From Convolutriloba macropyga (taxonomy: Eukaryota): 64,000 bases of DNA. The notes beneath the pieces were generated by a model that ran no database searches, was not told the origin of the DNA, and saw only the letters and a program-made list of their open reading frames with translations. The position numbers and the translations under genes were made by a program. Each line of letters opens with the position of its first letter. The stretch's first letter is position 1. Of this stretch, positions 4,315 through 60,400 are shown piece after piece. The stretch spans positions 38,874,001 to 38,938,000 of the forward strand of contig NC_134479.1 in the NCBI RefSeq assembly GCF_964194025.1, read 5' to 3'.

Positions 4315-4504
4315 NNNNNNNNNNNNNNNNNNNNNNNNNNNNNNNNNNNNNNNNNNNNNNNNNNNNNNNNNNNNNNNNNNNNNNNNNNNNNNNNNNNNNN
4401 NNNNNNNNNNNNNNNNNNNNNNNNNNNNNNNNNNNNNNNNNNNNNNNNNNNNNNNNNNNNNNNNNNNNNNNNNNNNNNNNNNNNNNNNNNNNNNNNNNNN
4501 NNNN
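4315..4504. other. Assembly gap (N run)
   Basis: Run of n. Confidence 1.
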
Positions 4505-32450: not shown

Positions 32451-32738
32451 TCGAACTGAATGACTGTTAAATCTGATTTGGGAACTTAAAAATTTCCCTT
32501 GGTTATTCCCTAAATCTTGTTTCGATTCAATAGTTGAAATTCTTTGAAGCAGGATGTTATAAACGTTCGGTATGCCTCGTCAAATGTAAATTATCGTTTG
32601 ATGACTGAGATTTTATCTCCTCATTATGAATTCTTTTTTAGATAAATGAAAAAATGAAAAGCTGGGTTGATAATGTTGATGTTTTTTTCCAGATTCAAAA
32701 ATAAAAATGTAAATTGGAATTTAAACTGGAGAACAAAG

Positions 32739-34533: not shown

Positions 34534-35316
34534 TGAGTCGATAGCACAGAAGGCAGAAAAAAGTCGCGTTTAGAATTTGATAGATAGGCATTGCATAATT
34601 TCAAGGATTTAAAAAAACCTTGTTCCCATTGTTTTCTGATTATGAAAAATCGACACTGTTTGGTATTCGCATGAAACTTTGATGAAAATCAGTGATGATT
34701 CTCAACATTCGTGCTTTCTGAATAGCAAATGTTGAAATGGTTTATTGGTTTCAATTTAAGTTTTCTGAAATATTTGATCTCATAAAATATAGATTTAAAA
34801 ATAGTCCACCAGAATGGGAATAATTCACATTTCTGCTTTCTAACTATCGCTCGATGCCGTAGAAACTTTGTTAGATGTGCAATTCTAGATGAATATTGCT
34901 TGTCGATTTGATTAATATTCTTCCCTGTACATCCCACGCTGTTTGATGTATGAATTAGAAATAAGAATATGCGCAGTTAAAATGTTATGAATGTTTATAT
35001 TTAACCAAATTCACTCAAGTTTAGAGACGATTTTTTCAAGAATCCTTCAAAGTCAAAGCAGAAACTGGATACAGAAGCGGAGATTTTAATGTGTGTTGTT
35101 GAAACAGCATTACTCCTCGAGGTTGTAAGCAATACATATCTCACATCTTCAAATGAAGGGGGTTGGATAGCTCTAAGCAGGCTGTAATTTTAGCGGAATA
35201 AAGCAATGATGCTTTTTTGTGCCAAGATCGCGATAGGATCCTATAACATGTGCCTTTACCGCATTGTTTCAAATGATTGCTGTTTTTCAGGTCTCAATGT
35301 GTTAACTATTTTGAAA

Positions 35317-36699
35317 ATGGAGCCGGAATCTCGCAGTGCAAGTGCGATCAGTAAAGTTGCAGATGCAAAACCCGAACCAGAAAGTTCTGGAATTGTACCC
35401 GTATTAGGACAAGCAAATTATGATCCGGAAACAGCTGTTGAATCTGCGAAAATGAAAGAAGTTAGAATCCAGGGTGAACCTCAAGCGTACATTGATAGTT
35501 ATGACGAAATGTACCCCAATTGGCAGCAAAACGAAGAACCAATACAAGTTCTAGACATTCCGTTAGTTATGAAAAGAACCCTGTTAGCAAATAGCAAAGC
35601 CAAGGAAGAGAAAATGACAGCTGAAGAGAAAGCTGATTGGCTAACTCAAGGAATGAGCCATTTACGTTTAGACCGCGAAAACATCGCTGTAATAGAAAAC
35701 CTCGAATGTTTCAGTGCAAAACTAACTCATCTTTATTTGCAACATAACAGAATTGAAGTTATATCTGGTCTAACTTGTTTGGAGAAGCTGAAGTTCTTGT
35801 GCCTATCTCACAATAAAATCAAAGTTTTGGATACAGAAGAGTTACCCAAAGATATATTGGTTATTTATATGGACGGCAACCCTTGTGCAGATAATTCAGA
35901 CTACCCTATGAATTTAATTTCAGCTTTGCCCAAACTGAAGTCAGTCGATTTTCAAAGTGTAACAGAAGCTCAAAAACGAAGAGCTCGTGCATTTCTTGAT
36001 CCAAACTTACAGGAACCGGGAGATGATTCAGAAAATTCTTCCTCTGAAAATGAAGAGAGTAGTGGCGACGAATCAGGTCCAGAAGATATAAGTTCGATTC
36101 TTGTGAAAGGATTCGACAAACTGGATCCTGCTAAACAGCAAATGCTGAATGAATTGGATATTGATATAGCTCAGGTTGAGAACATAGAGGAACTGTTGAC
36201 CACTGACCAGTTGCAAATTTGGCGGACATCGTATGAACAAGTTAAGATATTAAGTTCAAGTGAAGAGGGTGAAACGTCGAGTGGTGAAGAAAACGCTCAA
36301 CCAAACCCAGAAAATCAGCCATCGTCAAGTTCAGAACCAATCGCTAACACTGAAATCAAAGTTGTCAAGAAAGGTGGCAAAAAGAAACGAAAAACTAAGA
36401 AAAAGTCAGATGGCTTAAAAATCAAAACTGAGAAAGAGAAAAAGAATTTGAAAAAATTGGGAATCAATCCAGCTCATTTCAGAGATCTGACTGTTAAGCT
36501 TTTGGGACGGTCAAGAGCTCGGCAACTTGAAGATGTTCAAAAACACAACAAGAAACAAAGCAAACTGGACACTTTTCGAGAGCAGGAAAGCGAGAGATTA
36601 TCTAACAGGAAGTTACCCGTTTCTGACAGGGTTGTGTATGACAGAACAAATAAAGTAACGGTCGAGGTTTTGTCTGAAAGAGGAGGTCAATCGCATTAA
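35317..36699 (+). CDS. LRRC46: Leucine-rich repeat protein, LRRC46-like (single coding exon)
   Basis: HLRLDRENIAVIENLE, LTHLYLQHNRI, LKFLCLSHNKI..LDTEELPKDILVIYMDGNPC..Y..LISALPKLKSVD (SDS22-type LRRs + LRRcap, as in LRRC46), then an acidic linker. ATG 35317 follows the acceptor at 35290. Confidence 0.75.
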   Translation: MEPESRSASAISKVADAKPEPESSGIVPVLGQANYDPETAVESAKMKEVRIQGEPQAYIDSYDEMYPNWQQNEEPIQVLDIPLVMKRTLLANSKAKEEKMTAEEKADWLTQGMSHLRLDRENIAVIENLECFSAKLTHLYLQHNRIEVISGLTCLEKLKFLCLSHNKIKVLDTEELPKDILVIYMDGNPCADNSDYPMNLISALPKLKSVDFQSVTEAQKRRARAFLDPNLQEPGDDSENSSSENEESSGDESGPEDISSILVKGFDKLDPAKQQMLNELDIDIAQVENIEELLTTDQLQIWRTSYEQVKILSSSEEGETSSGEENAQPNPENQPSSSSEPIANTEIKVVKKGGKKKRKTKKKSDGLKIKTEKEKKNLKKLGINPAHFRDLTVKLLGRSRARQLEDVQKHNKKQSKLDTFREQESERLSNRKLPVSDRVVYDRTNKVTVEVLSERGGQSH

Positions 36700-38613: not shown

Positions 38614-39210
38614 ATGGCAGCTGGAATTCGAAAGAATGCACAAAAACGGCGAAAACGAAGGTCCAAGTCAGTATCGTTTTCAGACTTCAAGGAATCTTCA
38701 TCCAAAAGTTGTGAACAAAAGCAATTGCACACTGAAAGGAAAATGACCAAATGCTATCTTTGTAACGTCGACATTGAAGTTAGTACAAGTGTGTCGCAAA
38801 TCATACGTCATGAAAAAGGCAAACTTCATCAGTCCAAATCGGGAGTAAATGTTCACGAGACATTGTACAAGTGTTATTGTTGTAATAAATTGTTTTCGAA
38901 AACAAACGATTTGATGCGTCATCTCGAATTTGAACCTGATGAAATACTGGATCAAGGCACTTTGCTCTCAAGAAATGACGGTAAAAAGAATCCTAATCGA
39001 ACAAACGATCGCTTGTTGCCCAAAAGTGTTATAGTGGTCAGTGATCGTGAGCCAAAACATAGTAGAATTGATAAAAGGCAACGAAATGAAAGCATATGGT
39101 CAAAGAAGAGTGGTAAAAGTTTTTCGAACAATCAATATTGGAAGCAAGAGCGGTTTGTCCATCCAAATCTGAAAGGTGTGACAAAAAGAAATAGGAGATT
39201 TGGGCACTAA
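38614..39210 (+). CDS. Basic protein with two C2H2-type zinc fingers, the first U1/matrin-like; single exon
   Basis: CYLC-x15-HEKGKLH and CYCCNKLFSKTNDLMRHL, an NLS-like KRRKRR, first in-frame ATG at 38614, AATAAA at ~39327. Confidence 0.6.
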   Translation: MAAGIRKNAQKRRKRRSKSVSFSDFKESSSKSCEQKQLHTERKMTKCYLCNVDIEVSTSVSQIIRHEKGKLHQSKSGVNVHETLYKCYCCNKLFSKTNDLMRHLEFEPDEILDQGTLLSRNDGKKNPNRTNDRLLPKSVIVVSDREPKHSRIDKRQRNESIWSKKSGKSFSNNQYWKQERFVHPNLKGVTKRNRRFGH

Positions 39211-40752: not shown

Positions 40753-42204
40753 ATGTTGCGGCAACGTCTGGTTGCTTCCTTGGTCGCTCACAGTTGCGCT
40801 TTGAGGTCACAATTACAATCCTCGAGTCAAAGGCCAAATGTCAGCCAGAATCTACCTGTGACGAGTGTTCAAAAACGAAATGCGAGTCGCTTGGAACCTT
40901 CGTATCATTGCGATTTCGCAATTATCGGTGGCGGGGCCATCGGATCAAGTATCGCCTATCACATAAAAACTCACAAGGCCAACAAAGATTTTGATGTAAT
41001 TGTTTTTGACCGTGATTTGAATTATTCAAGATCGTCGACAGTGCTGAGCGTTGGCTCTATCAGACAACAATTTTCAATACCAGAAAATATTCAGCTTTCT
41101 AAAGATAGCTTTCAGTTTTTGGAAAATGCGAAGAGCAATTTAACAGTTTTCAGCGAAGATCCTGTTGATATTAGCTTTAAAAAATCTGGGTATTTATTTC
41201 TTGCAACTAAAAGTGGAATGGACCGGCTACACCAAAACAATGCAACACAAATTGCGTCAGGAGCAAAGTTAAAACTTTATTCATCAGATTCTCTGAAAGA
41301 AGTGTATCCGTGGATGAACGTTGATGACATTGCGGGAGGCTCCTTGGGAATAGAAAATGAGGGATGGTTTGATCCGTGGAGTTTTCTAAGCGCTCTGAGA
41401 AAGAAAAATGAAAGTATGGGAGTGCAATATGTTCAAGCAAATATTGTTAGTTTTCCTGATATCATCGATAGAGGCGAACAGCTAAATGTCGTTAGAGCCG
41501 CTATCGGCGACCCTGCTTTCCCTTCTGCGTCGCCCCTTTCAGTTATCTACGCTGGCGAGTACGTGAACGCTTGTGGTGCCTGGGCGGGACAATTAGGGCG
41601 TTTGATTGGAATCGGTGGGAAGTCCGAAGATGGTTCTTGTTACGACTTCTTGACAGATGGGTGGCGAATGGATCCCAGAATGCAATTCCCGATTCCCATA
41701 ATGCCGAGAAAACGGTATGTGTACGTTTTTCACTGTCCTAACGGACCCGGAATAAAGTGCCCGATGGTTGTGGACCCGAGCGGGGTTTACTTCCGAAGTG
41801 AAGGTCCGGCCGGGTACTATATCTGCGGAAAATGTCCATCGCCAGAACAAGAGCCAGATACCCATAACTTGGAAGTTGATTACGATTTTTTTGACGAGGA
41901 AATCTGGCCTATTTTAGCTGCCAGAGTTCCAGCATTTGAGAGCTTGAAAGTAACACATGCGTGGGCTGGATTCTACGATTACAATTTTATGGATAGAAAT
42001 GGGATTATAGGTTATCACCCTGTTTTTGATAATTACCTGATTGCTGCTGGATTCAGTGGTCACGGAATTCAAATGTCGCCTGCTGTTGGAAGAGCTGCCG
42101 CTGAACTTCTTTTGAAAGATAAATTTGAGACCTTGGATATGACACGATTTGGCTTTGATAGATTTCTTAGTAATCAGTTGATATATGAGCAGAACGTTGT
42201 CTAA
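40753..42204 (+). CDS. FOXRED1: FAD-dependent oxidoreductase domain-containing protein 1 (complex I assembly factor), single coding exon
   Basis: Arg/Ser-rich presequence, IIGGGAIGSSIAY, STVLSVGSIRQQFSIPENIQLS, GYLFLA, ENEGWFDPW, PRKRYVYVFHCP, WAGFYDYN..D.NGIIGYHP, GFSGHGIQMSPAVG. Confidence 0.95.
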   Translation: MLRQRLVASLVAHSCALRSQLQSSSQRPNVSQNLPVTSVQKRNASRLEPSYHCDFAIIGGGAIGSSIAYHIKTHKANKDFDVIVFDRDLNYSRSSTVLSVGSIRQQFSIPENIQLSKDSFQFLENAKSNLTVFSEDPVDISFKKSGYLFLATKSGMDRLHQNNATQIASGAKLKLYSSDSLKEVYPWMNVDDIAGGSLGIENEGWFDPWSFLSALRKKNESMGVQYVQANIVSFPDIIDRGEQLNVVRAAIGDPAFPSASPLSVIYAGEYVNACGAWAGQLGRLIGIGGKSEDGSCYDFLTDGWRMDPRMQFPIPIMPRKRYVYVFHCPNGPGIKCPMVVDPSGVYFRSEGPAGYYICGKCPSPEQEPDTHNLEVDYDFFDEEIWPILAARVPAFESLKVTHAWAGFYDYNFMDRNGIIGYHPVFDNYLIAAGFSGHGIQMSPAVGRAAAELLLKDKFETLDMTRFGFDRFLSNQLIYEQNVV

Positions 42205-42909
42205 TACCCAAGGAGGAGTCCAAAAAACTTCTTTCAATCTATTTTTCAACCAGAAGTTTGAATGATAATTGTATGTGGGAAAAGATTTGAATTGATGGTA
42301 AATAAAACCAAACATTTGAATGTTGCAATAGCAGTAATAGACAGTGCAATAAACATCAAAAAATGTTCCATTAATGGCATTATCTATGTTCGGGATTAAT
42401 GGGCAATGATTTTCAGGTCATCATACCGCCATCAACTTGTTTTTTCCAAGTTTTAGAATTGAAATAATTTAGTGCATTTTTTGAATAGTTTGACTTATAT
42501 TGATAATTTACCTGACATGAGTATGTCAAAGCTCAGTGAGAAGATGAGTTTGAATCATAGCATTTTGATCAAATTTTAGGTCCCTATTTTTTCGGAAAAT
42601 GACTGGACAGGAGCATCCGTTAGTTCCAGTGTGTTAAGAATGTAAATTTATGTCAGCGTCGGCAAGATAGTGTCAAAAATTTAAGCTGATGAAATCCATT
42701 ATCTTCAGCGCTCCGAGAACATATTTAATGTCACAGAAAGGACGATTGTTGTTCTAATTGATTTGAACCACATGCAAGTTTTGAAATTGAATTGAGATAT
42801 GTTAGTTTGAGTTTGAGATTTCAATGTAATTTTTTGAAAGTGAATACGGACCATAATCCCGTGAGTTCTATATAATTTGAAAATTCTGTTACCATTTCAG
42901 GTCCATGTA

Positions 42910-45900
42910 ATGAGACAGCAGTCTAGTGGTAATGCTATGACATTCACTGCCGGTGGACAAGGAGATGGTGGGGAATCGGATTCTTCTTCCTCTTACGAAG
43001 ACGGATCCAGAGATTCAGACGACGATGGTGTTATTTATGATGACGATGATGATGACGCTGAGGGTTCGGGTTGTGACCACTCAAATTGAACGTAATTAAC
43101 CATAGAGTTCTAGGCTGTCATTTTTTAAATTTTTTTTCAAAATCATACAAAGGTACTCAAGGGGATACACTTAACGGAGGGAAAACTTGAAAAGATATTT
43201 TCTTCAGCTGAAAATCTCTATCCTATGCTATCCATTTTATACAAGAATATTTTCCACTTAGACGTTTTTTTTTTCCTTTTGATTCCTAACTTAATGGCCT
43301 AAATTGATTATAGTGCACATATCTATGGCTGGCATGAAAATGAACTCTGCCACAAAGGGAGAGGGGAGGGTTAGAAACAATTATATTAAACTGCTTACTG
43401 ATGTAAATTGGTTCGTCCAAAAATAATTTACAAATCTTGCAGAAGTATGTAAATCAGAGCACTTATAGATCAAATGATGAAACCAAATTAAATTCTAGGA
43501 TGCGAAAAACTTGTTCGAGTGAAATTGCTAGAATGGGAAACTTTGAATAAACATATGAATATTCTGTCACAAGCCCCTTGTTAACCATATACAGCAGATG
43601 ACAGTGATTCAGAAATTGACGACGATGACGAGGATTCTGCCAATGAGGATGACGTCATAGTGCCTAATATGGACCAGCAGGTCAATGTGGAGTTTGAAGC
43701 ATTCCCGCCATCTGACACTGATTTCCAAGTAGAGCATGTTTTTGTATTAAAGAACACTTCCTTATTCGTATAAACCTGAAGAAAGAAATTGCGACGTTGA
43801 TGGCTGAGAGTGTTTGATCGTTGAGAGTAAATCACAATCATCAGTGGTCGTTTTGATGAATGAGGAGCTTTTAAAAATTTTCTTGTTATTATTAACAGCG
43901 AGCACTCATTCATAAAGTAGAAAAAAGCTAGCTTTTTGGCGATTTAAACGAATACTGAAGTATTGCCATTGATTCATAACAACTTTTGAGTTGCAGTTAT
44001 TCAAGAATATTTAACAGGGAGAACAAAGTGTTTTCAGATTATTCGTTAATTTGGTACATATTTGGAGGTCTGATGATCCTACTAGCGCATGGTTTGAATT
44101 GGAAGATTGAAAAATTATCAAACTGTTGAGTGCTTTATTGTGTTTAGAGTCTTGTGGCTTTATTGGGAAGGCTCTTCTACAAAAGTGAACCCCAAATAGA
44201 TCTGGCTCAGCTAGCGAACTGGATCATAGGTACGTGCTTTGGCGTTCAATCATAAATTTGCGATAAATAGTAAATTATTAATCGCTCTCAAGCGATGTAG
44301 CAATTATATTAGTCCTGCGGGTCTTTTTTAATGCCATTTTTCGTTGTAACAATTTTTCGTCTTTGAGCCTTACGGCTTACCAGTCTCTAAGTAGTTGACT
44401 CATCATAACTATTTAAGAAACTTAATTTCATTTGAAGGAGGGTTCTTCGAGTTTGACCCCCTCTCACGTAGCCCTCCCCCACAACTTCACATATGCCCCT
44501 CTCCTCTACCTCATTCCGCCTATAACCCCGCACGCTCGCCCCCACGCGCGCTCAACACCCTCCCCCTTGCTCACCCATCACACTCAATCAATCTCAAGCT
44601 ATCGTACCGAAGCCGCAAGTATTGCTACTGACGAATCCAAACGCGTGCCATAGTTTGAGAGCAATTTGCCCGCCGTTAGTCAGTTATGGTTTTTATGATA
44701 GATTCTAATAGCAAAGACGACGACTCGTTTTGGTTGTGTCCGTTGCATAGGAAGTGATAACATTGTCAGTTAGAAAAAGTAAAGTGGTTTAACAGATATT
44801 TTGTTGGCAGTCGAATGAAGAAAACAAGTTGTGAGGCTGTTGTTTTCTGAAGATTAAACTTACTCTTAATTTTTCGCAATTTAACATAGACTGCTACTGG
44901 TTTGTATAAACTTTTTACACGCTGCAAATTCTTTGCTACAGATGAGGAAAAAACAATGAACAAAAATACTGAAACTGTGTTATTTTTTTTGAAAAAATAT
45001 TAATTCATATCCTTCAAACAAAATTTTTTTGACGATCACGACGAAAAATGTGGATTAGTTGAAAGCTGGATAGAGTTCCTGTAAGTCTTATTTTGAAAAA
45101 GAATGGTTTGGTATCTGTTTTCCATCAACTTTTTCAAGAAACTGGCAGTGAAAAAGTTCTTTAAATAACTAAGACGAAGGGAGACAAAATTTGTGAACGG
45201 TTTCACGAAAATTAGTTTAACTAATTTCTCAAAAATTAATAGCTTCAAACTTGAAAAGTGCGCACCAAAAGGAAATAAGACCGCATGACAGAAAAGGAAT
45301 AAGACCCGCATGGCAGAAAAGACAAAGCAACTGAGCAATGATTGCCAAACAAGAAAAATACACTTTAACCGAAACAATCCTTGATCCGCTGAGTTGAACA
45401 CAGGCTCAAGAACTAGAAGTTTCCGAAAAATTTAAATTCTCGAAGCTTTTGAGCAAACGCTTAATTTCTTTCTTAATTTGTGAAGTTTAACAAGTTTCTT
45501 TTGCTTTGACAGCGGCCAACCTAATCTTATAGAAGTCCAACTGGTGTTTGAAATAGACGGTGATCGTTTAAAATTGAATTGTTCAATCCTTTAAAATTGA
45601 CGGTGATCGTTCAATCCTTTAAAATTGAATTGAAACGGGAGAAAAAATGTTTATAAAATCGAATTACAAAAATTGAAAAATATAGTTTCAGTTCTAATGT
45701 CATCAAAATCAATTAGACAAACTGGACACCTAGTGAAACTGTTGTTGATCCCCGTAGGAAATTACAGTCAAATAATACAGAAAAGTAAAATGTGACATTT
45801 TTGTTACCATTCTATCAAAAATTTTCTCTGTTTTATGAGATCAATAACTGCGTAAGATCAAACTATAACAAAAACTGCTCTTTCTCAATCCCCGTACTAA

Positions 45901-48146
45901 AATGATGATGGGGAGGTTTTTTATACCTTTTATGATCTCAATAGTGCCTGAGGAACTTATAGGCTTTACAGAATAAATATTTTTTAGTGGTTTTTTAAGA
46001 CTTTGTATTTCACTTCTGATCTCAGATAATCCGGCAGTGTGTTCCAGAACTTGGCACCGACTTGAGACAAATCTCTAACTAAAAACTTGTCAAGTAGCGA
46101 GAACTGTTGTTATTACTGACTTGTTTTGAGCAGACAGTTTTGAACTCCATCCTCTGTTTAACGGGCAACCAGTGCATGCTTTCCAAAAGACTCCTCTACT
46201 TTCCTTGGAAGGATCGAATATTATCCGAGTAGTAGCATTCATGCGTGCCAATTGAACCAAGTATCGAAGAGCGTTGTCAATTGACAGAATGTTGCTTTTT
46301 AAAAACACAGGAAAAACTTGATTGTAAATTTTGAGTGTGCTATGATAATAGGTCACAATTATGTGGGCAGTGTGCTGAAGACGAACAGTGCTGAAGTAGA
46401 TGATGAAGATGATGAATCAGAGAGTGATGACGTCATGGATGAAGATGACACTGTTTATGGAATCACTACTGTAGTCAATCTAAGACAGACTCCGTCTGGT
46501 TAGAGTTGTAATTTCGTTGCAAATAATTTGTCATCGATTCTGTTACGGCCCCGCCTTGCGGATGTTTAAATGGGTCTTTCCCATTATAGCCCCAGCTAGT
46601 TTTTTTTCTCGCTACGAAGTAACGGTCACGTTTTATAAGGCCACAAAGTTTGTCTGGGGGATAATGAACGACACAAGTGCGAGAGAATAGTTCCATAACT
46701 TATTGATTTACTAATGCCTTACAGATCGAAATGCTTGCTTTTTTCTTTGAAAACTGAAATACGCTCATGCAAGCTTTAAAAGACTTGCAATGCCAGATTT
46801 CAGAATTCTCAATACCAAATTTTCCCATATACAGTAGCAGATTTCAAACTTGCGAGCAATGTTACGTGACTCCGGCTTAAGTCACATGAGAATTCTGGCT
46901 TGCATATTGAGCCGAGCCGTGACTCCGCTTGATTTCACTCAGAAGTTCTCGGGTTAATCGGAAACCGCGTAAAGTTTGAGATGTTGATTTTTTAAAGTCG
47001 CGAAATCTTACTTAAAACAGACAACGCGCAAGTTTACAAATACCGAAATTTAATGGAAGTCAACTTCTGGCTGTGTATATCAGAACTTCTGGCATTGCAC
47101 ACTCACGCCATTTTAAAACTTGGATGTGCGTGTTTTGATATGTTTGTGTTTTGTGTAGGCAAAGAGGAGGGTTTTAAGCAGTCCATAATCAACTACATTA
47201 ACCACAAGTGCAACAGTCCTGAAATACAAACAGTCCTCAACAACAGTTCAAAAACAGTCGGCCTTTTAATCACAGAACGCTTTGTCAATATTCCGCCCCT
47301 ATTGGCGCCTCCCATGCTCAAGTGCCTCAGCAAAGAGATCGAATCTGCCAAACAGAAAAAGATGCCCTATAATTTTTCACACCTAATTCTTGTGTCTAAG
47401 AGTTATGACGTATCAAGTCAGGGTCCAAACACCACAGATGGGCTGCCACCTTGTTTGGAGTTCATAAATCCAGAAGATGAAATTTTCCAGGGATATTTTT
47501 GCAAATTTTGTCTATTTTTTGTTTCTTAGTCTGAGGTGCTTTTCGATTTGTCTAGGTCTTCTAAGGTGAACTGTAATTCTTTTTAGCTGTGAATCTGTGA
47601 ACTAAGTTGGACGGCAATATTGGAGTCTTTTGGAGTTATAATTGGGGCCCAGTCTTTTGAAAGGATTTGAATTGTATTGTGGCCCCACCATTGACTAAAA
47701 AGTCATTGTGATCTATGTTTTTAAAGAAAAAATGGTTTGATTTTTTGTGAAACTGTTTTTTGCGAATTTCAAGAGCAATAAACTACGAATAGTTTTCGTA
47801 TTCTGTTTCCTAGGGTTGACGTGTTTTGGAGTATCCTTTTAAACATAATTTGTCTCCAGGTCATAATAAACTTATTTTATTCGCATCATCTGTTCACGCA
47901 AAAACTCTGAAAATATCCCTGTTTATTATACTGCAGCAATATGCTCAATGTGTAGCAAGTTTCCCAGTTCCAGAAGCCGAAGACTTGGTCGGAGGTTCGT
48001 GGGGTCCCAAGGACAAAGCGATGCCCCAGTACCGAACTGTGTGTTTACTGCCCATGGACAAATTCAAAGCTGCCGTTACTCAAATTTCACAGACTTTTAC
48101 TGTTGAAAATATGATGTCACTTTTAAATGCTCAAAATAGTCAGTAA
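42910..48146 (+). CDS. BCCIP: BCCIP/Bcp1 homologue, 6 exons
   Basis: Exons 42910-43063, 43595(or 43598)-43728, 44148-44229, 46352-46498, 47159-47490, 47937-48146. Acidic N-terminus, VNVEFEAF..SDTDF, NYVGSVLK, VYGITTVVNL, VGLLITERFVNIPP.LAPPM, FINPEDEIF, GGSW, RTVCLLP. The last donor is non-canonical (see findings). Confidence 0.88.
45960..46310 (-). mobile_element. Possible LINE 3' fragment in BCCIP intron 3
   Basis: Minus strand reads SQVGAKFWNTLPDYL (~46068-46022), resembling the GxxxWNxLP C-terminal motif of L2/CR1 ORF2. Confidence 0.45.
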
Positions 48147-48455
48147 ATATTAATAAATTTATTCGCAAATAGAAGTATGTGTTTTTGTGTGTTTAAGAAG
48201 AACAGCTTTCTGATTGTTTTTAGAATATTCGAGCTTTCATGTCGATTTTTCATTTAAACAGGGAACAGATTTCTGATAAAATTTATTCTTAGTTTTTGAA
48301 GCTGGAATTTTTTGTTTGTTTGAGAGTGTATTGTTAGTGTAAACGTTCTTCCAGATAAGATGCGATCATTTTTATTAAAATTACGTAAACTGAACTGTCA
48401 CGTAATTGGGATGGTCTTTTGAAACTCAAATACTCTTTCAGATTAATATGTAGTT

Positions 48456-51400
48456 ATGGACGAAACCCCCAAGTACACAGACTTAGACGCAGAACCTTCT
48501 AGAAAGTACACGAATCTTGACTCGTTCCAAGGACCCGCGGCTGCCCCTTCCGCGGCACCCTCATTAGCCCCGACAAACCCAGCTGGCTACCCAAGCATGG
48601 ATCCCAACAGTCCTCAGGCAGGCTCAGCTTATAATGGCTACTATCAGCAGTCGCCAGGGGGTTCCAATGGGTACTATAACGGGATGATGCCTGGACAACC
48701 GCAGCCAAGGTTCGGAACAGGTGTTTTTATGGAACTTTTTTTAGCTGTCTTTTATTGTAACGATCATTCGCATAGAATCTGCATATCCATGAAAAGTTTC
48801 TTCATCCCCATAGTATGTGACTTTGGATTTGATAATCTTTCAATAAAATATAAATTAGTTAGTTGTTAAAATCAGATAAAGCTTAGTGTATAATTATATG
48901 GAGATTATGCACATTTCCTTCGTGGTTTTTGTGAAATGTTAATTTTTGTATGTAAAATTGATGGAATCTGGGGAAAGAGTTTTGATAATAATGTAATATT
49001 TGGTTGTCTAAGCTGTGATTGGGTTTCTGTTCAAGGTATCCAATGGGTCCGCAGGCAGCATACGGATACCCTGCACCTTCTGTTGATCAGCAAAATCCTG
49101 CCGGTTACGTGCAACAACCCCCACATCCTCAGCAGCCCAGTTACCCAATGACGTCACAACAGGGACCCGTGAATCCTCAGTACTTGGCACAGCTTCACAG
49201 TGAGATAGAATACTACAAAGCAGAAGTTGCTAGGATGTATGTGATGCCGCCCTCCACAGATTTAGCGGCAAAGATCCGTGATTTCCAGACTCGGATATCG
49301 TATCTCGAGGGTAAAAAGGAATACCTTGCGATGGGTTCCCAGCCTGGCCAGGTTGCCCCTGGTTATCCTCAATCACCAGCACGTTACCCGAATCCTTCAG
49401 ATCCAAATTACATGCGAATGGGTTACCCAAGAACGCCGGTTGGATATCCGAATCGTCCTGCTATGCCACAACAAGTACCACAGACACCTCCAGGTGGGCA
49501 TTACTATCAGAACCCTAATCAACCTGCCGGGTATAATGTATACGATAACAAGCAGCAACCAGGTGGTGCCCAAACTATGGGATATCCTTACTACGCACAA
49601 AACTATCAAATGGATCCCAATCAAGTTCAAGGAACTCCGGGATCTCATAACGGGTACCCTCAAGCTCCCCAGTACCCTGCTCAGCATCCGAGTGCAAGCG
49701 CGGGAGGGTACCAAATGCCGCAACCACAATCAGGATACCAACCTCAAACTCAACACAGTGCAATGAATCAAGCGTCCCAGCAACCTCACACTCCACAGCA
49801 ACAGCAAATAGTCAGACCTCAATCTAGTGTAGCGCTTCCGGTCTCACAGGTTCAGCCCCCACAACCAGTAGTTCAGACTCCAGTTCGACCAGCCTTTAGC
49901 ACTCCGTCATCAGTAGCTCCCAGAGCCTCCCCTGATCAGATCCAAAGTATAAGACCGGCATCTCCAAGAAGCGCGTCGAATAGCAAACTTGAATCGCCAA
50001 AACAACCAGTAGCAAAAAGCAGTGATTTAGATGTTACTCAAGTTAACTCAAGTATTGACGCTGCTCTAGATAATGCGAAACCTATAACTTATTCACCACA
50101 AGCTACATCCTTAGTTTCCAGTTTTGTACAAAGCGCTTTCAAATCAAAAGACGAAAATAGCCCTGATTCGGGTGTAACAGGCGCTACAGCTAGTGTAGCC
50201 ACCTCCGTTCAACATAATGAACAGACGTTGCAGCCTCCCATGCCACCGATTGTTGACAACAAACAAATGGTCAACGTTCATGGGAATTCTAACCCGCTAC
50301 CTCCGATATCGGTATATCAACCTGTAGTTTCTAGTCAACTAAGTTCACCGTCTCCACAACAATCGTCAACAGCTCGAGAACAATTGTCACCTATCGCCAG
50401 GAAAGAGGAGGTTCCAGTACCGCAAGCGCCCAGTTTTGAACCCTGTGAAAGTTTGATTCAGAAGCACGTAACAGCAACCTCAGAAATGCACCCCGCTAGT
50501 GCTGAAAGTCAGTCAAAATTGGGTTTCGAAATGCCATCGACATCCGTAACCTCTCCTAAGCTTCAGCAACAAGAAAGTGCAAGTCCTTCAGGCAGTTCAG
50601 TTGACAATGCTTCGCAACCGAGTGAAAGCGAAGATGAACCAAAAGTGTTCTCAACGTTGACGTCGCATTCCATTACCAGCAAATCCGAGAAAACGGAAAT
50701 GGCGTTACCATCTTTCAGTCAGCAATCTGCAGTACCAACTAGTGGTCCAGCGCATTACGCACCGATGCAAGGACCCCAACCTTATCCTGTCCGCCCTCAT
50801 GCTATTCCGCCGCCAGGTATGTCATCAATTCGTCCAGGGATGCACCCACAGCCCATGCCAGTTCCAGGGCATCATATGCCGGGGCAGTACAGACCCGAAT
50901 ATCCGATGAACCCAGGCCAGAACCCTTACATGCAGCCAATTCCTCCGGGCACTCAACATATGCCGCCGACTACTGGGCAGCCTGGCATGTATCCTCAAAT
51001 GCACTGGGGTATGCCAGGTGGAGCTCCAGCGGGGATGCAACCAATGAATGGCGCACCCGCACCGTTGCCGCAACAGGCACAGTGGCCAGCACAGCATGCA
51101 ACTCCACCGGGATACCCGCCTTTGGCGCCAGCTGGTCCACTGCCGCCACCGCGTCATCAAACACCCTCGCCTCGAGGGGGTAAAAAATCCGCAAACGGTA
51201 AAAACAGTTCTTCAGCCGAAGGCAAACGTGTGAAGAAACGCCGTAAAGACACAGAAAAGGCCATTCCCGATTCGACAACGTCGGAACTCGGAGAACCAGT
51301 TAGCAGTTCTAATGAAATTCTATCGTGCAATGAATTTAACGCCTCTAACGTTGACAGCCCTGCGGAAGAGCCATCGAGTTCTCAATGTGACAGTGCTGTT

Positions 51401-54400
51401 CCGACTACCAAGAGAGGCAAAAAGCGAGGCGAAAGTCCCAAGAAACCGAGAAGAGTGGGTAAAAAGGCCAAAGATAAAGATCACAACGAAGCAGAGGGAA
51501 TTGATGTGAGTAGCGTTGAGTTAGCCTCACTTGAAATGATCGCAACGTCGGTAGATACCTCAACTAACAATAGCAATGCAGAAACTACAGTAGAATTGCC
51601 AAGTCCCTCTGATGTTTCTCAGTCAGTTAAAAAACCGAGAAGACTTACTACAAAGATTGGCAATAGCAAGAAGAAGCGAAAGAGGTTCAACTCGAGTGAT
51701 GACGAAATTATGTTACCTCCTGAGGAGTTGAATCTACCCCCGGAAGAATTTATGGAAAAGCGGAGATCCGAAAGAAGTAGCGGTTAGTTTCCGGTTCAGT
51801 TTTTAGGAAATCTCAGCGTAAACCTTAGTCAATAAACACTTGCATATACGCGTGCAACGGTTCTGAATCTGAACTAATTTTTTGCTACATCAATAAGTTA
51901 CTCAGCAATCGGTGTATCTTTTGATAAATGACATGAACTTATGAATGATTCTCAAAACAAAAAAAAATATTTCGTTTTAATAAATTAAAACTATTGCAAA
52001 GTTTTTATCTAAATTTTTTTTAGCATTGACCAGTTAATGACCAATATATTTTTTATAAAAATATTTTTGTAAGTGTTGCATTTTGATGAGGACTGTAAAT
52101 AGATTCCAATGCTCAACAATTTTTAGCCCGTGCAAGGAAGAATTACATTGCTGATGACTTGATCGACTACGCGCTGGGAGCGGGAAGTGATGATGATGAT
52201 GAGACGCTGCCTGCAGACATTCTAGAAAGTTCTATCAATAGTGCAATAATTGAGCAGTCAACCAACACAGCCTCAACTGAGGGTTAGTGATTTCAATATT
52301 TTTATTTACTCCATAAGGTATGTAACGATCAAGGGATAAGTAGACGGTTTCCATTTCTTCACTGTGAGATATTCGTAGAAACGTACATATATGTATTACG
52401 AGTTAATGCATTACTAAGCCATGTCTATGCCTTGAAATGAAAATTTTCGAGGTGTGGTAGGTTCTATCAGAATTATCTAAAGATGTTCTCAGCCACATGA
52501 TAGCGGATAGCTGTGCTTATGAAAATAGGCATGCTTGAACAAAAATTGAAAATTGACCAAGAGAATGGAGAAATTTAAAATTTTATTTTAATTTACATTC
52601 TAGGATCAGCAGCTGACCTTGTAGAATCAAGCAGCTGCTCAACTGTGGCTGGAACCGAAGACAGTTCCAGTCAGGGTACCTCGGCAGGAACTAGTTCCAA
52701 CTTCATGTCACCCAGCTCTGCGTCTAAGAGCAAACAACAAGCGGAAGCTCAATTGTTGATTCCGGCTCAGGTGGAAACTGACACTTGTGTGGTGGAAAAG
52801 ATTTTGATCTCTCGAGTTAGGACAATCACAAAAGAACAGAACGTGAGTATTTTCCATGTTTCATTAATTGGCTATATATGATAATTTTTAATATTAGAAG
52901 CTTCTTAAGTTCGAGCTTGTTTTTGATTGCTATAGACAATTTTTACAGCTGAATTTTTGTGTTCTGCTTTAGTCACCGGCTGAAGCAGTGAAAGTGAAAA
53001 CTGACCTGCCAGTTGAACGAAGTGCACCTAGCAGTACAGATAAAGCTGAACCAACAATGGATTTGCCAAAAGATGAAACGAAATCAGATCAAGTAGCCAC
53101 TGAAGAGAAACCAGAAACGACAGTCACGACTGAGACGTCGCCAACAATTACGTCATTGAACGAACCGTTGTGCAAGACCTCATCAACTGAAGAACCAACA
53201 ACGACGGAAGCACTCACATCGTCTGCAGACAATCAAGAACCTACCGAGACCTCAAAGGATACTTCGGAAAACAGTTCTGCGAAACAATCAGCTCAACTTG
53301 CAATCGAGATGCCGAGTCCAACATCAAAATCAACTATTACCACACTTGGAAGTCCAACAAAATCGGAGAAAGGTTCTCACAAATCGTCGTCTCATACAAG
53401 TCCACCCATAATAGTCACAGAATATTTTGTGAAATTTAAAGGACTCTCGCATTTGCATTGTGAATGGGCAACTGAAGAAGCATTGACTATGAAAGATAAA
53501 AGATTTCCCCTCAAGCTGAAGAGATTCAAGCTGGTAAGTGTGCCAAATGTTCATGAATAGCTGTGGTAATGGTAGCTGATCCAAGCTGTTACAGGGTTGA
53601 TCTTATTTTATATCCGCGTCAGCTATTCGGCATATGATTACGCATTTTTGTGACTTCGCCTATTGATATCGCGACTTGGCAAAATTTTTCTTGAAAATGT
53701 TTTGAGTGTCTCGGGCAAATTTCTCCTATGATTCTGATCAAATATCATTTAAAGAGCAAGTGCTCAGCGAAGTGATATTATTAATGTAATAGCAGTTAAA
53801 GCCGCAAATGAATTCGAAGACCAAATACCCGTAAGGACCGGTCATTAACGCTCATTACTTAGATTAGCTTAATTCGTTAGCTACGAAATGACATCCGAAT
53901 GTTGTTGACGTTCAAAACGGTATTTGGCAACTTCTTCCTGGTGTTGAATACTATCTACTCTGTATTTTGCTTGTCCACCATTAACTGTGACTTAGAAATC
54001 AATAATTTTGTAGATTTTATGATTAGGTTTTGTTTTTGACGAAATTTCTTTAATGTTGGATGTAAAAAAGAAAAGTGTCGAGTGCATACTGGAGCACCGT
54101 ACAATCTTCATCTACAATCTTTGCTAAATTGTTAATGTAAATGTTAAATAACAGAGGACCTAAATAGTACCTTGTGGAATCCTCATTTCAATGTTATCCA
54201 ATCTGATTGAATTCCGATTAGGAAATCCTTTTGCGTTCTTTTACTCAAATAATTCTCAAATATTAAATTGGTAGCATGTACGTCAAAACCTGTATTTGCA
54301 AGTCTTAGTGAAAAGATTTCGTCGTTTATACGTTGGTTTATAAAATTTCCGGTTGGTTTCATCAAATATTTTGGTAAGAAAAAATTGCAGATGTTAAACA

Positions 54401-57400
54401 ATTAATCTATCGGACAATCAAAGAATTCTAGATGCAGGCGAAAAATTCAATTTTAACTGTATCCGTTGTATCTGTTCTTTGTAAATCTGAATTTGATTGA
54501 ACTGGTTCTTTTATGGTTGATCTTGAACAATTTTTTTTGGCAATTATTGTGGTTTTTCCGCATTCCGGCATAGGTTTTCGGTCTTAGTTGCTGAAATGAG
54601 AGGAAAGTTTTGTCTGCAGTTTCTTAATATCTTGAATTGTAATGTAATTCAGCGGACTTGATTTGGTGCTATTTTTCGACTTCGTTGCACGCGTGACGTC
54701 AACTTATTGGAGCAATTTTCTTGCTAATTCGGTTAAATAATTGCTTGTCACTGGCTTGCCTCTCTCAAATTGAATTTCGCTCTCCAACAAAGTGAATTTT
54801 GTTTAATAGCCGCGTAGCGATAGCGGCTATAATTGGGACATCGTGGTTTTTTTTAATTCGTCGTCTCCGTCGATGGTTCTTGCGACCTGACTTCTTGCAA
54901 TTGACTTTTTCATTTTCAGTGATTTCTACTGCTTTGCATTTAAAATTTGTGTGCATGACGTCATTTGTTCTGCTTTTAGGTCAATTGCGTGACTTACCTC
55001 ACTCAAAAAATGACTTCTGAACTGGCCTTATGAACTTTAAATTTTTTGATAGTTTACTAGTTAAATGTCAATAGTGTGCATCTAAGTAGTGCCAAACGTA
55101 TATGCCTCAGTTCTTGGGTATTATTTTTGATTTTGATTATGAATTTCGAAAAAGCTCCTTTAGGACTTTTTCCATATAGAACGTATGTGTCTCATAAAAA
55201 CATTTCGAATCTAACCAAGTGGTCTATTAAAGGTCTGGTGTTCAATCTGTCTATCTTATTTTTTTAGTTGAACTCTTTTTTGAACATTTTATGAAAAGTT
55301 TTGATGAACATTTACTTGTTAAAGGTCAATAGTGTGCATCTAAGTAGTGCCAAACATGTATGCCCTAATTCTTGATTATTAGAGTCTTGAGTTTTTGATT
55401 TCGAATATTAATTTTGGGATCTTCTCCGTTTGTGCCCTCAATACGTTATGCGCCTCCCAGTTACAGAGCACGTGCCATTACATAGTAAGTCATTATGTAA
55501 AAACTATTGCACGTGCATAATAATATGCGCCCACTAAGCTGAGGGGGCACAAACGGAAAAGATCCTAATTTTGAAAAAACTTTTAGGGCTTTCTCCTTAT
55601 AGAGCTTATGTGTCTCATAAAAATGACAGTCCACAGCTAACCCAAAAAGTCTAGTAGTCTATTAAAGGACTGGTGATCGATCTGTCTATCTAATCTCTTT
55701 AGTTGTTTCAATTCATGGAAGGCCCCAAGCGTCTATCGCGGCTATTTTCCGGCAATCTGCCGGCTATGTTATTGAGTGGTAACTATTTTTCTATTTTAAG
55801 CTCGGTTTTTCAGAATATTTTGTCTTTGGTTTGTTTCATCCTGAATTTTGAATGAGCAAGGCGCTTTTGAAGTAATGGTTGTTGATGTAAATTTTTCGCT
55901 TAACCGATTTAAATGCTTGTATGCTTTTTGTACGGTCACCATTTGTTAATTAATAGATCAAAGCGATAATAGAGACAATTATTGGTTTCATTGTTTGATC
56001 ACACTTCATAAACTCATAGTCTGGCTTCTGAATTTATTTGACGTCATTTGTTACTGCTTTGTGTATATAAGGTCTCGTGTTTTTTGAGGATGCTTGAGTT
56101 ACTTCATTGAGTAAATTGACTGCTTGAAAGCATGACTATTGCGTTCACTTATAAAATCGAAATCGAGAATGAAACTGCTAGATCATTTCAAGGCTATTTC
56201 ACTTGTAAGGCATTTTGATTATTTTCAGATTTATTTAATTTTGTTGTCAATTTGGTTATTTTAAAGGTTGATCTCAGTTTATATGGCTATAACGTTGTGT
56301 GAAATGTCTTTTTTATGATCATGTATTTGGTTTTTTTGTGTTGTTTATGCCAACTTTTGCACTAGAGTCAACGCAGTTTTGATAATTTTTCCTAACTTTT
56401 AGAAATTGTCCTTTTTCCGTTTTTTTTCAATTCTTTAGGCCAAAGAAACCTTTTAATATTTGTTCAAGATTTAAAATTTTTAAGTTTTTTTCGTGTTTTT
56501 TTTTCACTTTAAGTGAGCAAGAAAACATTTTTCAGGCTGAAAGTGTGGTTGGTGATTAATTGTTTGATGACCCAGATAGAATTTTGAACATGTTTGAAAA
56601 TTCAAGTTCTTTTAGTGTAAGGTGACAACTTATTTTAAAACTTTTTAACTCAGATCTGTGGTAATGAATAGATGTCGGCTTTACGGAAGTTATTTTGAAA
56701 GTATTTTCTAAGATTTTAAGCACCTTTTTGTAGTTCTGCATTTTTCCTGTCCTTTTTTATAGCTGCGAAGCTGTAAGCTGAGCGGAGCTATATTGCTGTG
56801 CTCTTGGTTTTTTTTACATATCAAAGAATTTGAATTGTATTGGGGCGCTGTCTTTTCAAGATCTGTTCACACATTTTCATGATTTCTGAAGTCAAATCGA
56901 AGTAGTGATTTTGGTCGCGCCGAAACAGGAAGTGGAGCGAAAAAGTGAGTGATTTTGCGGCATGAATTTTTTGCTCTATTTTTAAAGTAGAGTGAGAATA
57001 CGGTGTTTGAACAAAAATTCGCTTTCTCGGTAGTGTTTTTTGTTCACATGCGGCAATTTCACTGATTTTTACTGTTTTTTCGATGTTTTGGATCGGATTT
57101 TTTTCTAAAGCGTTTCCACTATCCGTTGATAGCTCATTCCAGGCCTAGTTTTTTGTTTGAACCAAATTTCCATTTCTCGCTAATGGTTTTTTGTACACAT
57201 GCTGCATTTTTACATTGATTTTCTGCTTTTTTAAAAATTTTTGATCTGATTTTGTAGAAATGGTTTTTCCAAGTCACTCATAGTCCTTTCTAGGTCTAGT
57301 TTTTTGTTTAGTCAATGAAAATTCTTTGAATTGTACGTCAGGACTTGTCCTGCTATGTTTTTGTTTCGTCGTCTGACGCTCTTTTTCGTTTTACATTTGT

Positions 57401-60400
57401 TCATACATCAAAGCTGAAAAAGTCAAATTTTTTGAATGAGTTTTTCCTCTCACTAACAGCGTTTGCGCGCGTGACGTCATTTCTCACTCGCTTTAGCGAA
57501 AGTTTTTGGGTTATTTGCGTTATTAGATTTTGATCATACGTGACTTACCTCACTCAATAAGATGAATTTTGCACTTTAAAGCTTAAGTTTAATTTGAATT
57601 AGTTTAGGCTTCTAATAATAGGCTTCTGTGGAATGTATTTCAACAAGCTTTATTAATTTATCGCTGAATGTTTTTTACATAGCTTTTTGAACGGCGTCGA
57701 CGTCGATTTTTTTTTTCAATTTAGATCTGTATCTGTTTCTATCTGTATTATACAGCACGCAAGTCTATTCTTTCGCAGCGATTCCGGCAATCTGCCGGCT
57801 ATGTTAGCTCATGCTTATGTTTTCGCTTATGCTTGTCGTTTGTGTCCGAAAAGATATTCGTGAATTGCCCATTTTGTGTTTTGTTTTTTTTTCGACTATT
57901 TGTGTTTTAGTTATTCGTTTTCTTTACCTTAACAACCGGTGAATTTACAGTTCAAATTCTGTTTTGATAATTCTGAAACTATGTAAAAATAGTTTTCTGT
58001 TTGTCAATTTTTTTCTGTTTGTCAATTTTATGTTTGTCATTTTTTTCTGTTTGGTTTAATCACTGGTAAACATGCTCGATTTTTGAAGCTGGTCAAAAGT
58101 TAGATTTCAAGCAAAAGTTATCCAGTGCTTGCCTTGTTATTTCGGAGTTGCTCTTGATTAGTTAGCTCAAGCCAAAATTAGGTTAGTTTCGATTTTTAGC
58201 CCCTCAATATAGGATTTGACTGAACGATTTTTTTATACTGACTTGACGCGTTTTAAGTAAGCAATATCCTTTTTTATCAGAAACAGCTGGAAAACAGTGG
58301 GTCTGGCAGAGTCGAAGATTGTACGGAGGAGGAACCGTTCAATCCAGACTTCACAGAAGTTGACCGAGTTCTCGATTGCATGCTGGCACCTCAAGAGGAT
58401 GGCGATTCAGTTGACAGCGTTACGGGACAGCCTAAGAGGCATTTCTTGGTGAAGTGGTGCTCGTTACCGTACGAGGAAAGTACGTGGGAGTTGGAGGAAG
58501 ACATAGATGTGCAGAAGATCCAACATTTCTTCAAGGTCAATGATCCCAAACAGGTATGTGTGATCTTGCTTGTCATTTGAAAAGCACGAGCAATTTTGAA
58601 AACAGAAACTTGAGATAATTGTTCGAGCTGTGTTCTTGACTGAATTGGCTCTTATGATGTGCGACAAGTTTGTCTTTGAGAACCACTTAGATTAGTAATA
58701 GGAGCAATTGGAGATGACGGCTTCCATTTTATTTTTGTAATTGTTTTATTTTGTTTTATTGCATTAATTTCTTGTTTAGATTGAGGTACAACGGCAAGCA
58801 TCTCGCAAAACGCGTCCGACATTCAAGGAGTGGAAGAAACTCGAAGAAATGCCAGTTTTCAAGAACAACAACGAGCTTCGAGACTACCAACTGGAGGGCA
58901 TTAATTGGCTGCTTTACTGCTACTATAAACATCAAAACTGTATCTTGGCAGACGAGATGGGATTGGGTAAAACTGTTCAATCAGCGACCTTTCTTGAAAT
59001 GGTCTTCAGAACTGGTATCCATGGTCCATTTTTGGTTATCGCTCCGCTTTCGACCATTTGTAACTGGCAGAGAGAGTTCGAAGGTTGGACAGATCAAAAT
59101 TGTATCGTCTATCATGGTTCACAAACTAGCAGAAATATGATTCAGCAGTATGAAATGTTCCACAAGGATCCCAAAACTGGTAACTTGAACAAGAAGAAAT
59201 ACAAATTTACGGCTTTGATTACTACTTATGAAGTACTGTTAGCTGATTGTATGGACATGTTTAAAGATATAGAGTGGCAGGTATGTATTATTGACGAAGC
59301 TCATCGACTGAAAAACAAGAAGTGCAAACTCATGGACGGTCTGAATATGTTGTACTTGGATCATATAGTTCTACTCACTGGAACCCCCTTGCAAAATAAC
59401 GTTGATGAACTCTTTTCCTTACTTAACTTCCTTGACCCGAATAAGTTCTGCAATAACCAGGAGTTCCTTAAAGAATTCGGGACATTGCAAAGTGAAGAAC
59501 AGGTGAACAAACTACAAGCAATTTTGAAACCTTTAATGTTAAGAAGGTTGAAAGAAGATGTAGAACGAAGTATTGCTCCTAAAGAAGAGACAATTATTGA
59601 GGTCGAATTGACAAACGTGCAGAAATCCTGGTACCGTGCAATAATTGAAAAGAACTTTTCTCACATAGCCAAAAGCACCTCGTCAGGTGCTAAAGCATTG
59701 CCAAATTTAATGAACACAATGATGGAACTTAGAAAATGTTGCAACCATCCATTTTTACTTAATGGCGTCGAAGAGCAAATTTTGCACGAGTTCGCGACCA
59801 ACCCGGAAGGTGTGGACAATCGATACCTAGACGCGTTGATTCAAAGTTGTGGTAAAATTGTCCTTATTGACAAATTACTTCCGAAACTGAAAGAGAGCAA
59901 CCACCGAGTTTTGATCTTCAGCCAAATGGTTAAATGTTTGGATATAATTGAAGATTACATAACTCAGAGGAATTACTCATTCGAAAGAATTGATGGAGGT
60001 GTTCGGGGGTTACAAAGGCAAGCTGCGATCGACAGATACAGCAAGCCTGGCTCTGACAAGTTTATATTCCTTTTGTGTACAAAAGCTGGTGGCTTAGGGA
60101 TCAATTTGACAGCAGCGGATACTGTTATTATTTATGATTCGGACTGGAATCCTCAAAATGATCTGCAAGCACAAGCTAGGTGTCACAGAATTGGACAGAG
60201 GAAACATGTTCAGGTGTACAGGTTGATCACAAGGTATGTTTTTGATAGGCTTCTCTTCCGATAGTCTAAACCTAATTGAGCACCCACATTTTTTTCAGAA
60301 ACACCTACGAGCGTGAAATGTTTGACCGAGCTAGTCAGAAATTGGGTCTGGACAAAGCAGTTCTTCAGACTATGAGTGGCAGAAAAGCTGCGATTGGGGC

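Follow-up and report, generated by a model that had tools for sequence, protein, structure and literature searches.

On chromosome 12 of the acoel Convolutriloba macropyga, the gene for a CHD-type chromatin remodeller begins a few hundred nucleotides behind the stop codon of BCCIP, which lies on the same strand. How does the downstream gene obtain the 5′ end of its mRNA? We addressed this question in a window of 64,000 nt (OZ077310.1:38,874,001-38,938,000; assembly GCA_964194025.3), to which all positions below refer. An earlier note on this sequence had read the BCCIP–CHD junction as an intercistronic region, at which 3′-end formation is coupled to trans-splicing as in Caenorhabditis elegans operons. 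Drawing on five acoel loci and on leader-bearing transcripts of related species, we find it very likely that a spliced leader (SL) is added at position 48442, directly behind a conserved acceptor. Whether BCCIP and CHD are in addition co-transcribed, as a true operon, is a proposition that the genomic comparison leaves evenly balanced.

A conserved acceptor precedes the CHD start codon

Direct reading of the sequence reproduced each landmark on which the earlier note had relied, namely the BCCIP stop at 48146, the AATAAA at 48152-48157, the G/T tract behind it, the acceptor at 48441 and the CHD ATG at 48456. Pfam and the NCBI annotation likewise bore out the identities of both genes. The CHD protein belongs to subfamily III (CHD6-9/kismet). 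In the annotated 3604-aa product, Pfam recognizes tandem chromodomains, a SNF2 helicase, a helicase-C domain, a CHD6-9 HTH and a BRK domain, with the chromo and helicase open reading frames (ORFs) lying within the window. The gene is more than 15 kb long, and its orthologue in Symsagittifera roscoffensis is named CHD7-like by RefSeq.

The loci of four relatives were found by a word search with a BCCIP exon ORF, combined with contig look-ups. They comprise S. roscoffensis (L006/L010), a 5-kb metagenome scaffold with short introns (L007) and two ENA assemblies (L008 and L009). In all five acoel loci, CHD lies directly behind BCCIP on the same strand. Each of them has a YTTCAG 14-18 nt before the CHD ATG, and it is at this acceptor that conservation begins. 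A TTCAG within 25 nt before an ATG is expected by chance with a probability of about 0.04-0.06 per species, the frequency of TTTCAG in this AT-rich DNA being 0.0013-0.0018 per nt. The N-terminal motif M-x-x-x-P-x-YTDLDAE-x-S-x-KYTNLD is invariant in the five species, which identifies ATG 48456 as the true CHD start.

The reading frames behind the acceptor are short. A TAA at 48444-48446 stands in the CHD frame, a TAG follows at 48451-48453, and the third frame is closed after about 20 codons. Because every frame except the ORF from ATG 48456 closes this soon, any exon spliced onto 48442 would be non-coding. What the stretch between acceptor and start codon does contain is a minute upstream open reading frame (uORF) of the form AUG(…)UAG, present in all five species, with 2-3 nt between its end and the main AUG. 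Three species have AUG-UAG, one has AUG-AUG-UAG and one AUG-AGG-UAG; the conserved AUG-UAG before the CHD start is a candidate control element.

BCCIP transcripts of related acoels carry the spliced leader

S. roscoffensis belongs to the same family as C. macropyga (Convolutidae). SL trans-splicing affects 30.2% of its genes, and the leader has been published as a 32-mer, in a paper that does not mention operons and holds nothing on BCCIP or CHD7 (Martinez et al., G3 2022/23; PMC9911081). Querying with full-length BCCIP protein from S. roscoffensis returned BCCIP transcript contigs from related acoels. One JGI metatranscriptome contig (L013) consists of 19 nt of the leader 3′ end, then 11 nt, then the BCCIP start codon. 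Another JGI contig (L014), the closest to C. macropyga (78%), shows 9 leader nt followed by 9 nt and the ATG. The third, a Logan RNA contig (L012) whose BCCIP is 89% identical to that of L008, begins with the last 8 leader nt; its exon start matches the genomic cag/ATGTTATGAGATCAGG of L009 (here and below, a slash marks the junction), right after the conserved BCCIP acceptor. For L013 and L014, the distance to the start codon suggests that the junction is homologous to the genomic acceptor.

BCCIP mRNAs of three related acoels thus bear the leader just before the start codon. This supports, for one gene of the cluster (BCCIP) and in relatives, the notion that a conserved acceptor just before an ATG is a leader site. 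In C. macropyga, BCCIP itself starts behind such an acceptor, and the arrangement cag/(gtcc)ATGT[T/A]ATGA recurs in both S. roscoffensis and L009. That C. macropyga uses the leader as well would follow from its close kinship with these species. A single leader type was seen, always on BCCIP mRNAs; it contains no AUG and does not end in AUG.

At the leader–exon junctions, L012 and L013 read …AAATAG/A and L014 reads …AAATAG/G. The leader may hence end in …AAAUAG, which would make it 31 nt long and one base shorter than the published 32-mer. The published leader sequence, searched across the window with up to 3 mismatches, gave no match; this stretch thus contains neither an SL RNA gene nor an SL-headed copy. 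An Rfam scan of the window returned no match either.

The case for leader addition at 48442 draws on several of these observations. The clade uses the leader widely, and in a relative the leader is joined at a BCCIP acceptor built in the same way; moreover, the CHD acceptor appears to be under selection in five species while the sequence upstream drifts, and there is no coding continuation upstream. It is for these reasons that we regard leader addition as very likely. The trans-splicing half of the earlier proposal therefore gains support from the leader on three relatives' BCCIP mRNAs and from an acceptor kept in five genomes, support that is indirect for CHD itself.

A candidate poly(A) site and a drifting spacer separate the two genes

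Behind the BCCIP stop, an AATAAA is followed by a GU-rich element (Table 1). By chance, an AATAAA would fall within 30 nt of any chosen point with p about 0.02. Among the 47 plus-strand AATAAA hexamers of the window, only two have a GU-rich tract 10-45 nt downstream, the one at 48152 being among them, which argues that it is not a chance hexamer. The end of BCCIP thus resembles an ordinary bipartite poly(A) site of animals, with a predicted 3′ untranslated region (UTR) of roughly 20-30 nt.

The remaining spacer contains further hexamers resembling poly(A) signals, a GATAAA at 48275 and an ATTAAA at 48374-48379 (62 nt before the acceptor), along with a weaker acceptor-like ttcttccag at 48346-48354. 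It is devoid of TATAAA. RNA folding of the spacer gave nothing special (z = +0.2). Compared with the spacers of the relatives, shared 8-mers did not exceed the expectation from shuffled sequences, and the spacers of the five loci cannot be aligned. The AATAAA, GATAAA and ATTAAA of the C. macropyga spacer are spaced by about 100-125 nt, and short direct repeats show the same spacing. This gives a hint, and only that, that duplication of a unit bearing a poly(A) signal, about 100-125 nt long, may have lengthened the spacer; the internal repeats are short and weak, and TRF reported no tandem repeat in the spacer.

A possible shared BCCIP–CHD precursor and its alternatives

Taken together, the features of the junction suggest the following course of events. 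The BCCIP promoter would give rise to a single precursor covering BCCIP and CHD. BCCIP would be freed when this precursor is cleaved and polyadenylated at the AAUAAA/GU-rich site, some 20-30 nt past the stop; about 270 nt downstream of there, the CHD RNA would receive its cap through trans-splicing, in the manner of SL-resolved operons, with tttcag at 48436-48441 serving as the SL trans-splice acceptor of the CHD7-like gene. At the head of the mature CHD mRNA would then stand the acoel leader of roughly 31 nt (…CUUAUUAAAUAG), joined at 48442 as …CTTATTAAATAG and followed by 14 nt of genomic 5′ UTR, including the start-stop uORF AUG-UAG, up to the CHD AUG.

Several observations are consistent with a shared transcript. 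A canonical poly(A) site after BCCIP is followed by an apparently unconstrained spacer, and the spacers seem to hold no conserved promoter-like block. In two species, spacers of 150-170 nt must already accommodate the BCCIP 3′ UTR and its signals. Spacers also stay short though the introns of these genomes absorb kilobases of transposons. Finally, the pair seems to persist where its surroundings have changed: the gene upstream of BCCIP is DAO in two species and SMC-like in L008 and L009, so that BCCIP–CHD is the one portion of the cluster retained in every locus.

Other considerations weigh against co-transcription or against the strength of the case. Some adjacency of tightly packed genes is expected without any function, and conserved adjacency is weak evidence for a common transcript because tight gene pairs are rarely split by random breakage. 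Spacers of 300-500 nt, and likewise those of 485-527 nt, are long enough for a promoter, and SL trans-splicing by itself does not imply operons. Neither AATAAA nor ATTAAA occurs in the spacers of S. roscoffensis, L008 and L009, which have only TTTAAA 70-97 nt before the acceptor; a uniform geometry from poly(A) signal to acceptor is hence not shown, although the spacer of L007 has an AATAAA 73 nt before the CHD acceptor. Nor does the lack of a good GT donor prove the acceptor unpaired, because non-GT donors exist here, as in a GG-AG intron of BCCIP (see below). On the RNA side, no RNA run was found to contain the locus, all four runs containing it being DNA, and no CHD 5′-end transcript of any species turned up in protein collections or JGI contigs. 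A word search with CHD exon 1 returned the window's own ORF only. Exact look-ups and 90% clusters for the single-exon cluster genes and the CHD N-terminal ORFs led to NCBI or ENA genome sources only, and a profile search with the CHD N-terminus across 1.84 billion representatives returned just three genome ORFs. Scanning the JGI contigs with a degenerate CHD N-terminal motif gave 0 matches; with a BCCIP C-terminal motif, it gave only the already known L013.

We weighed three alternatives, here in descending order of rank. The foremost, which we consider possible but unlikely, keeps the trans-splicing and dispenses with the operon: CHD would be monocistronic, transcribed from its own promoter in the spacer or in the 3′ part of BCCIP, with a short outron discarded and the pairing of the two genes being historical. 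Such an arrangement would suit a clade in which about 30% of S. roscoffensis genes are trans-spliced and operons go unmentioned in the corresponding paper (PMC9911081), and a short spacer is, by chance, rarely struck by rearrangement. Room for a core promoter could be found in the 295-527-nt spacers of three species, yet L007 and S. roscoffensis would have to fit the BCCIP 3′ UTR, poly(A) signals, promoter and outron into 150-170 nt. The C. macropyga spacer has a palindromic TTACGTAA with a CACGTAAT close by, 35-60 nt ahead of the acceptor; we rejected this pair as a promoter element since it is not conserved in the relatives, where no spacer motif is kept, the ACGTAA pair included. The C. macropyga spacer, moreover, has a GC content of 29% and no TATAAA.

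Ordinary cis-splicing, which we hold to be improbable, would pair the acceptor at 48441 with a non-coding first exon, either in the spacer or far upstream. In the latter case, BCCIP would be enclosed by CHD's first intron, or the two genes would have a 5′ exon in common; a nested arrangement would likewise hold both genes together. The earlier note had named gtatgt, gtaaac and gtaatt as candidate donors. All are present (the first at 48176), every spacer has a GT in fair donor context, and non-GT donors are used in this genome. However, the candidate donors are conserved neither in position nor in sequence among the relatives, gtatgt belongs to the GU-rich element at BCCIP's poly(A) site, and donors at 48386 and 48403 would yield introns of merely 55 and 38 nt. 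The gap between DAO and BCCIP, about 200 nt in S. roscoffensis, offers an upstream CHD exon little space, and the BCCIP acceptor of the same design receives the SL in relatives (on three mRNAs, in L012 at the homologue of the genomic acceptor). The last alternative, an acceptor-like motif that goes unused while transcription starts in the spacer and the 5′ UTR stays unspliced, strikes us as highly implausible. Nothing specific speaks for it beyond the fact that TTTCAG is common in AT-rich DNA, and it is at odds with a YTTCAG kept at nearly the same distance from the ATG in all five species, amid otherwise saturated sequence, with a chance expectation of 0.03-0.06 per species.

Relation to known SL systems and operons

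SL-resolved operons are known in nematodes, tunicates, flatworms and chaetognaths. Our literature search found no report of operons in acoels or other xenacoelomorphs. The layout described here corresponds to this known type, albeit with a rather long spacer, and is plausible as an operon though unproven. With C. elegans SL2-type operons it shares same-strand genes, in C. macropyga an AAUAAA of the upstream gene in the spacer, an acceptor shortly before the downstream AUG and the lack of promoter-like conservation in the spacer. It differs in that the acoel spacers span 150-527 nt, as compared to about 100 nt in a typical C. elegans operon, and in that the downstream gene is a very large regulator. 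We know of no SL2-type second leader and no Ur element in acoels. The simplest reading is instead the one familiar from the single-leader operons of Ciona, Oikopleura, Schistosoma and chaetognaths, where one leader serves both solo and downstream genes. Tunicate operons have almost no spacer, in contrast to the C. macropyga pair with its spacer and predicted poly(A) site.

With respect to the SL system of S. roscoffensis, the 19, 8 and 9 leader bases at the head of the BCCIP contigs agree with the published leader's 3′ end, and its genome holds the same gene cluster; the …AAATAG/G junction of L014 departs from it, in line with a leader possibly one base shorter. The uORF before CHD resembles the AUGUAA start-stop uORF of plant NIP5;1 in that an AUG and a stop stand directly before the main AUG and are kept across species. 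It differs in having one extra codon in two species.

What is new here is the conservation of the BCCIP–CHD7 pair across five genomes, the leader-bearing BCCIP transcripts of three relatives and the conserved start-stop element before CHD7. Going further, BCCIP and the CHD7-like gene may form a true SL-resolved dicistronic operon across several acoel lineages, the first documented in Xenacoelomorpha, in which a housekeeping promoter drives a dosage-sensitive remodeller whose output is set post-transcriptionally by the start-stop uORF; we put this fuller proposal at somewhat below an even chance. If it is true, acoels would be one more lineage linking SL trans-splicing with operons, and the question would arise of how a developmental regulator such as CHD7 is controlled without a promoter of its own.

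Haplotypes and introns at the BCCIP end of the pair

The junction lies on continuous sequence: in Logan DNA, one unbroken contig of about 8 kb, starting at 46750, spans at least 46750-50200 without joints. A second haplotype is represented by the haplotig L011, which is 99.6% identical to the window over 46141-57530. Differences number 31 in about 1 kb (46141-47105) as opposed to 10 in about 10 kb (47106-57530), the latter amounting to little variation given the heterozygosity of 3.65% reported for this genome. Between 47973 and 48520, the comparison with L011 revealed zero differences. Because diversity is low across the whole 5′ part of CHD, this identity over the spacer is uninformative on constraint. 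Positions 1-9087 of L011 differ in sequence from the window upstream of 46141 and contain ORFs on the minus strand, among them an rve integrase; a BCCIP intron here carries a transposon insertion confined to one haplotype.

Another BCCIP intron, at 47491-47936, starts with GG and ends with AG, has CAG flanking on both sides and is read across by the RefSeq model P0040 as EIFQ/QYAQ. It has no counterpart at this position in S. roscoffensis, L007, L008 or L009, and appears to be a non-canonical GG-AG intron acquired recently.

Organization of the surrounding gene cluster

In the NCBI annotation of the same record, five co-oriented coding sequences (CDSs) occupy the plus strand of the window (Table 1), and the full order UBE2J-LRR-DAO-BCCIP-CHD is common to C. 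macropyga and S. roscoffensis. Runs of N stand at 4315-4504 and 15769-15898. An ORF between LRR and DAO (38614-39210, 198 aa) is doubtful as a gene, with no Pfam match, no relative in the four other acoel loci and no annotation; the co-oriented cluster therefore comprises five supported genes rather than six or seven.

Table 1. Features of the BCCIP–CHD junction and the surrounding cluster. Positions are those of the window.
Feature	Position	Strand	Length and details	Basis
UBE2J-like CDS	32673-34533	+		NCBI annotation
UBE2J uORF	32707-32712	+	ATGTAA	
Second junction	35197-35290	+	AATAAA 35197-35202; LRR acceptor G 35290; LRR ATG 35317	sequence, annotation
LRR uORF	35297-35305	+	ATGTGTTAA	
LRR protein CDS	35317-36699	+		NCBI annotation
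DAO-family oxidoreductase CDS	40753-42204	+		NCBI annotation
BCCIP leader acceptor (putative) and start	42890-42912	+	tttcag ending 42900; 9-nt 5′ UTR; ATG-TAA 42905-42910 overlapping BCCIP ATG 42910-42912	sequence, relatives
BCCIP CDS	42910-48146	+		NCBI annotation; Pfam PF13862
BCCIP exon	44148-44231	+		RefSeq model P0040 comparison
BCCIP last coding exon	47937-48146	+	stop TAA 48144-48146	sequence, annotation, tblastn of RefSeq model P0040
Spacer, candidate intercistronic region	48147-48441	+	295 nt; 29% GC	sequence
Poly(A) signal (predicted)	48152-48157	+	AATAAA, 6 nt past BCCIP stop	sequence
GU-rich downstream element	48175-48194	+	contains gtatgt	sequence
CHD pyrimidine tract and CAG acceptor, predicted SL trans-splice site	48430-48441	+	ctctttcag; tttcag 48436-48441; AG 48440-48441; body from 48442	sequence, five loci
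CHD genomic 5′ UTR	48442-48455	+	14 nt; start-stop uORF ATG 48448-48450, TAG 48451-48453	sequence, five loci
CHD CDS, CHD6-9-type	starts 48456	+	3604 aa	NCBI annotation, Pfam
CHD first coding exon	48456-48722	+	89 codons; ATG 48456-48458; intron 1, 48723-49054	sequence, annotation
Stop-to-acceptor distance, BCCIP–CHD, C. macropyga (window)			295 nt	
Stop-to-acceptor distance, BCCIP–CHD, S. roscoffensis (L006)			170 nt	
Stop-to-acceptor distance, BCCIP–CHD, L007			150 nt	
Stop-to-acceptor distance, BCCIP–CHD, L008			485 nt	
Stop-to-acceptor distance, BCCIP–CHD, L009			527 nt	

Small uORFs, either start-stop or of three codons, recur between the leader acceptor and the main ATG in four of the five annotated cluster genes. 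Relatives retain those of BCCIP and CHD (ATGTTATGA in S. roscoffensis and L009). Since the leader has no AUG, the uORFs would be the first AUGs on the mRNAs of these genes.

The junction between UBE2J and LRR also has an AATAAA before an acceptor, and the distance of 88 nt between the two, given in the earlier note, is accurate on direct reading. In S. roscoffensis (OY783236.1; L010 717-4599), the NCBI annotation joins the UBE2J-like and LRR genes as one 699-aa product, a model that needs a splice from within the last UBE2J exon to the acceptor before the LRR start. If RNA supports this fusion, a common precursor would exist at that junction. An operon organization, if true, would also be relevant to the annotation of acoel genomes, RefSeq having already merged a pair of adjacent genes from the cluster in S. 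roscoffensis.

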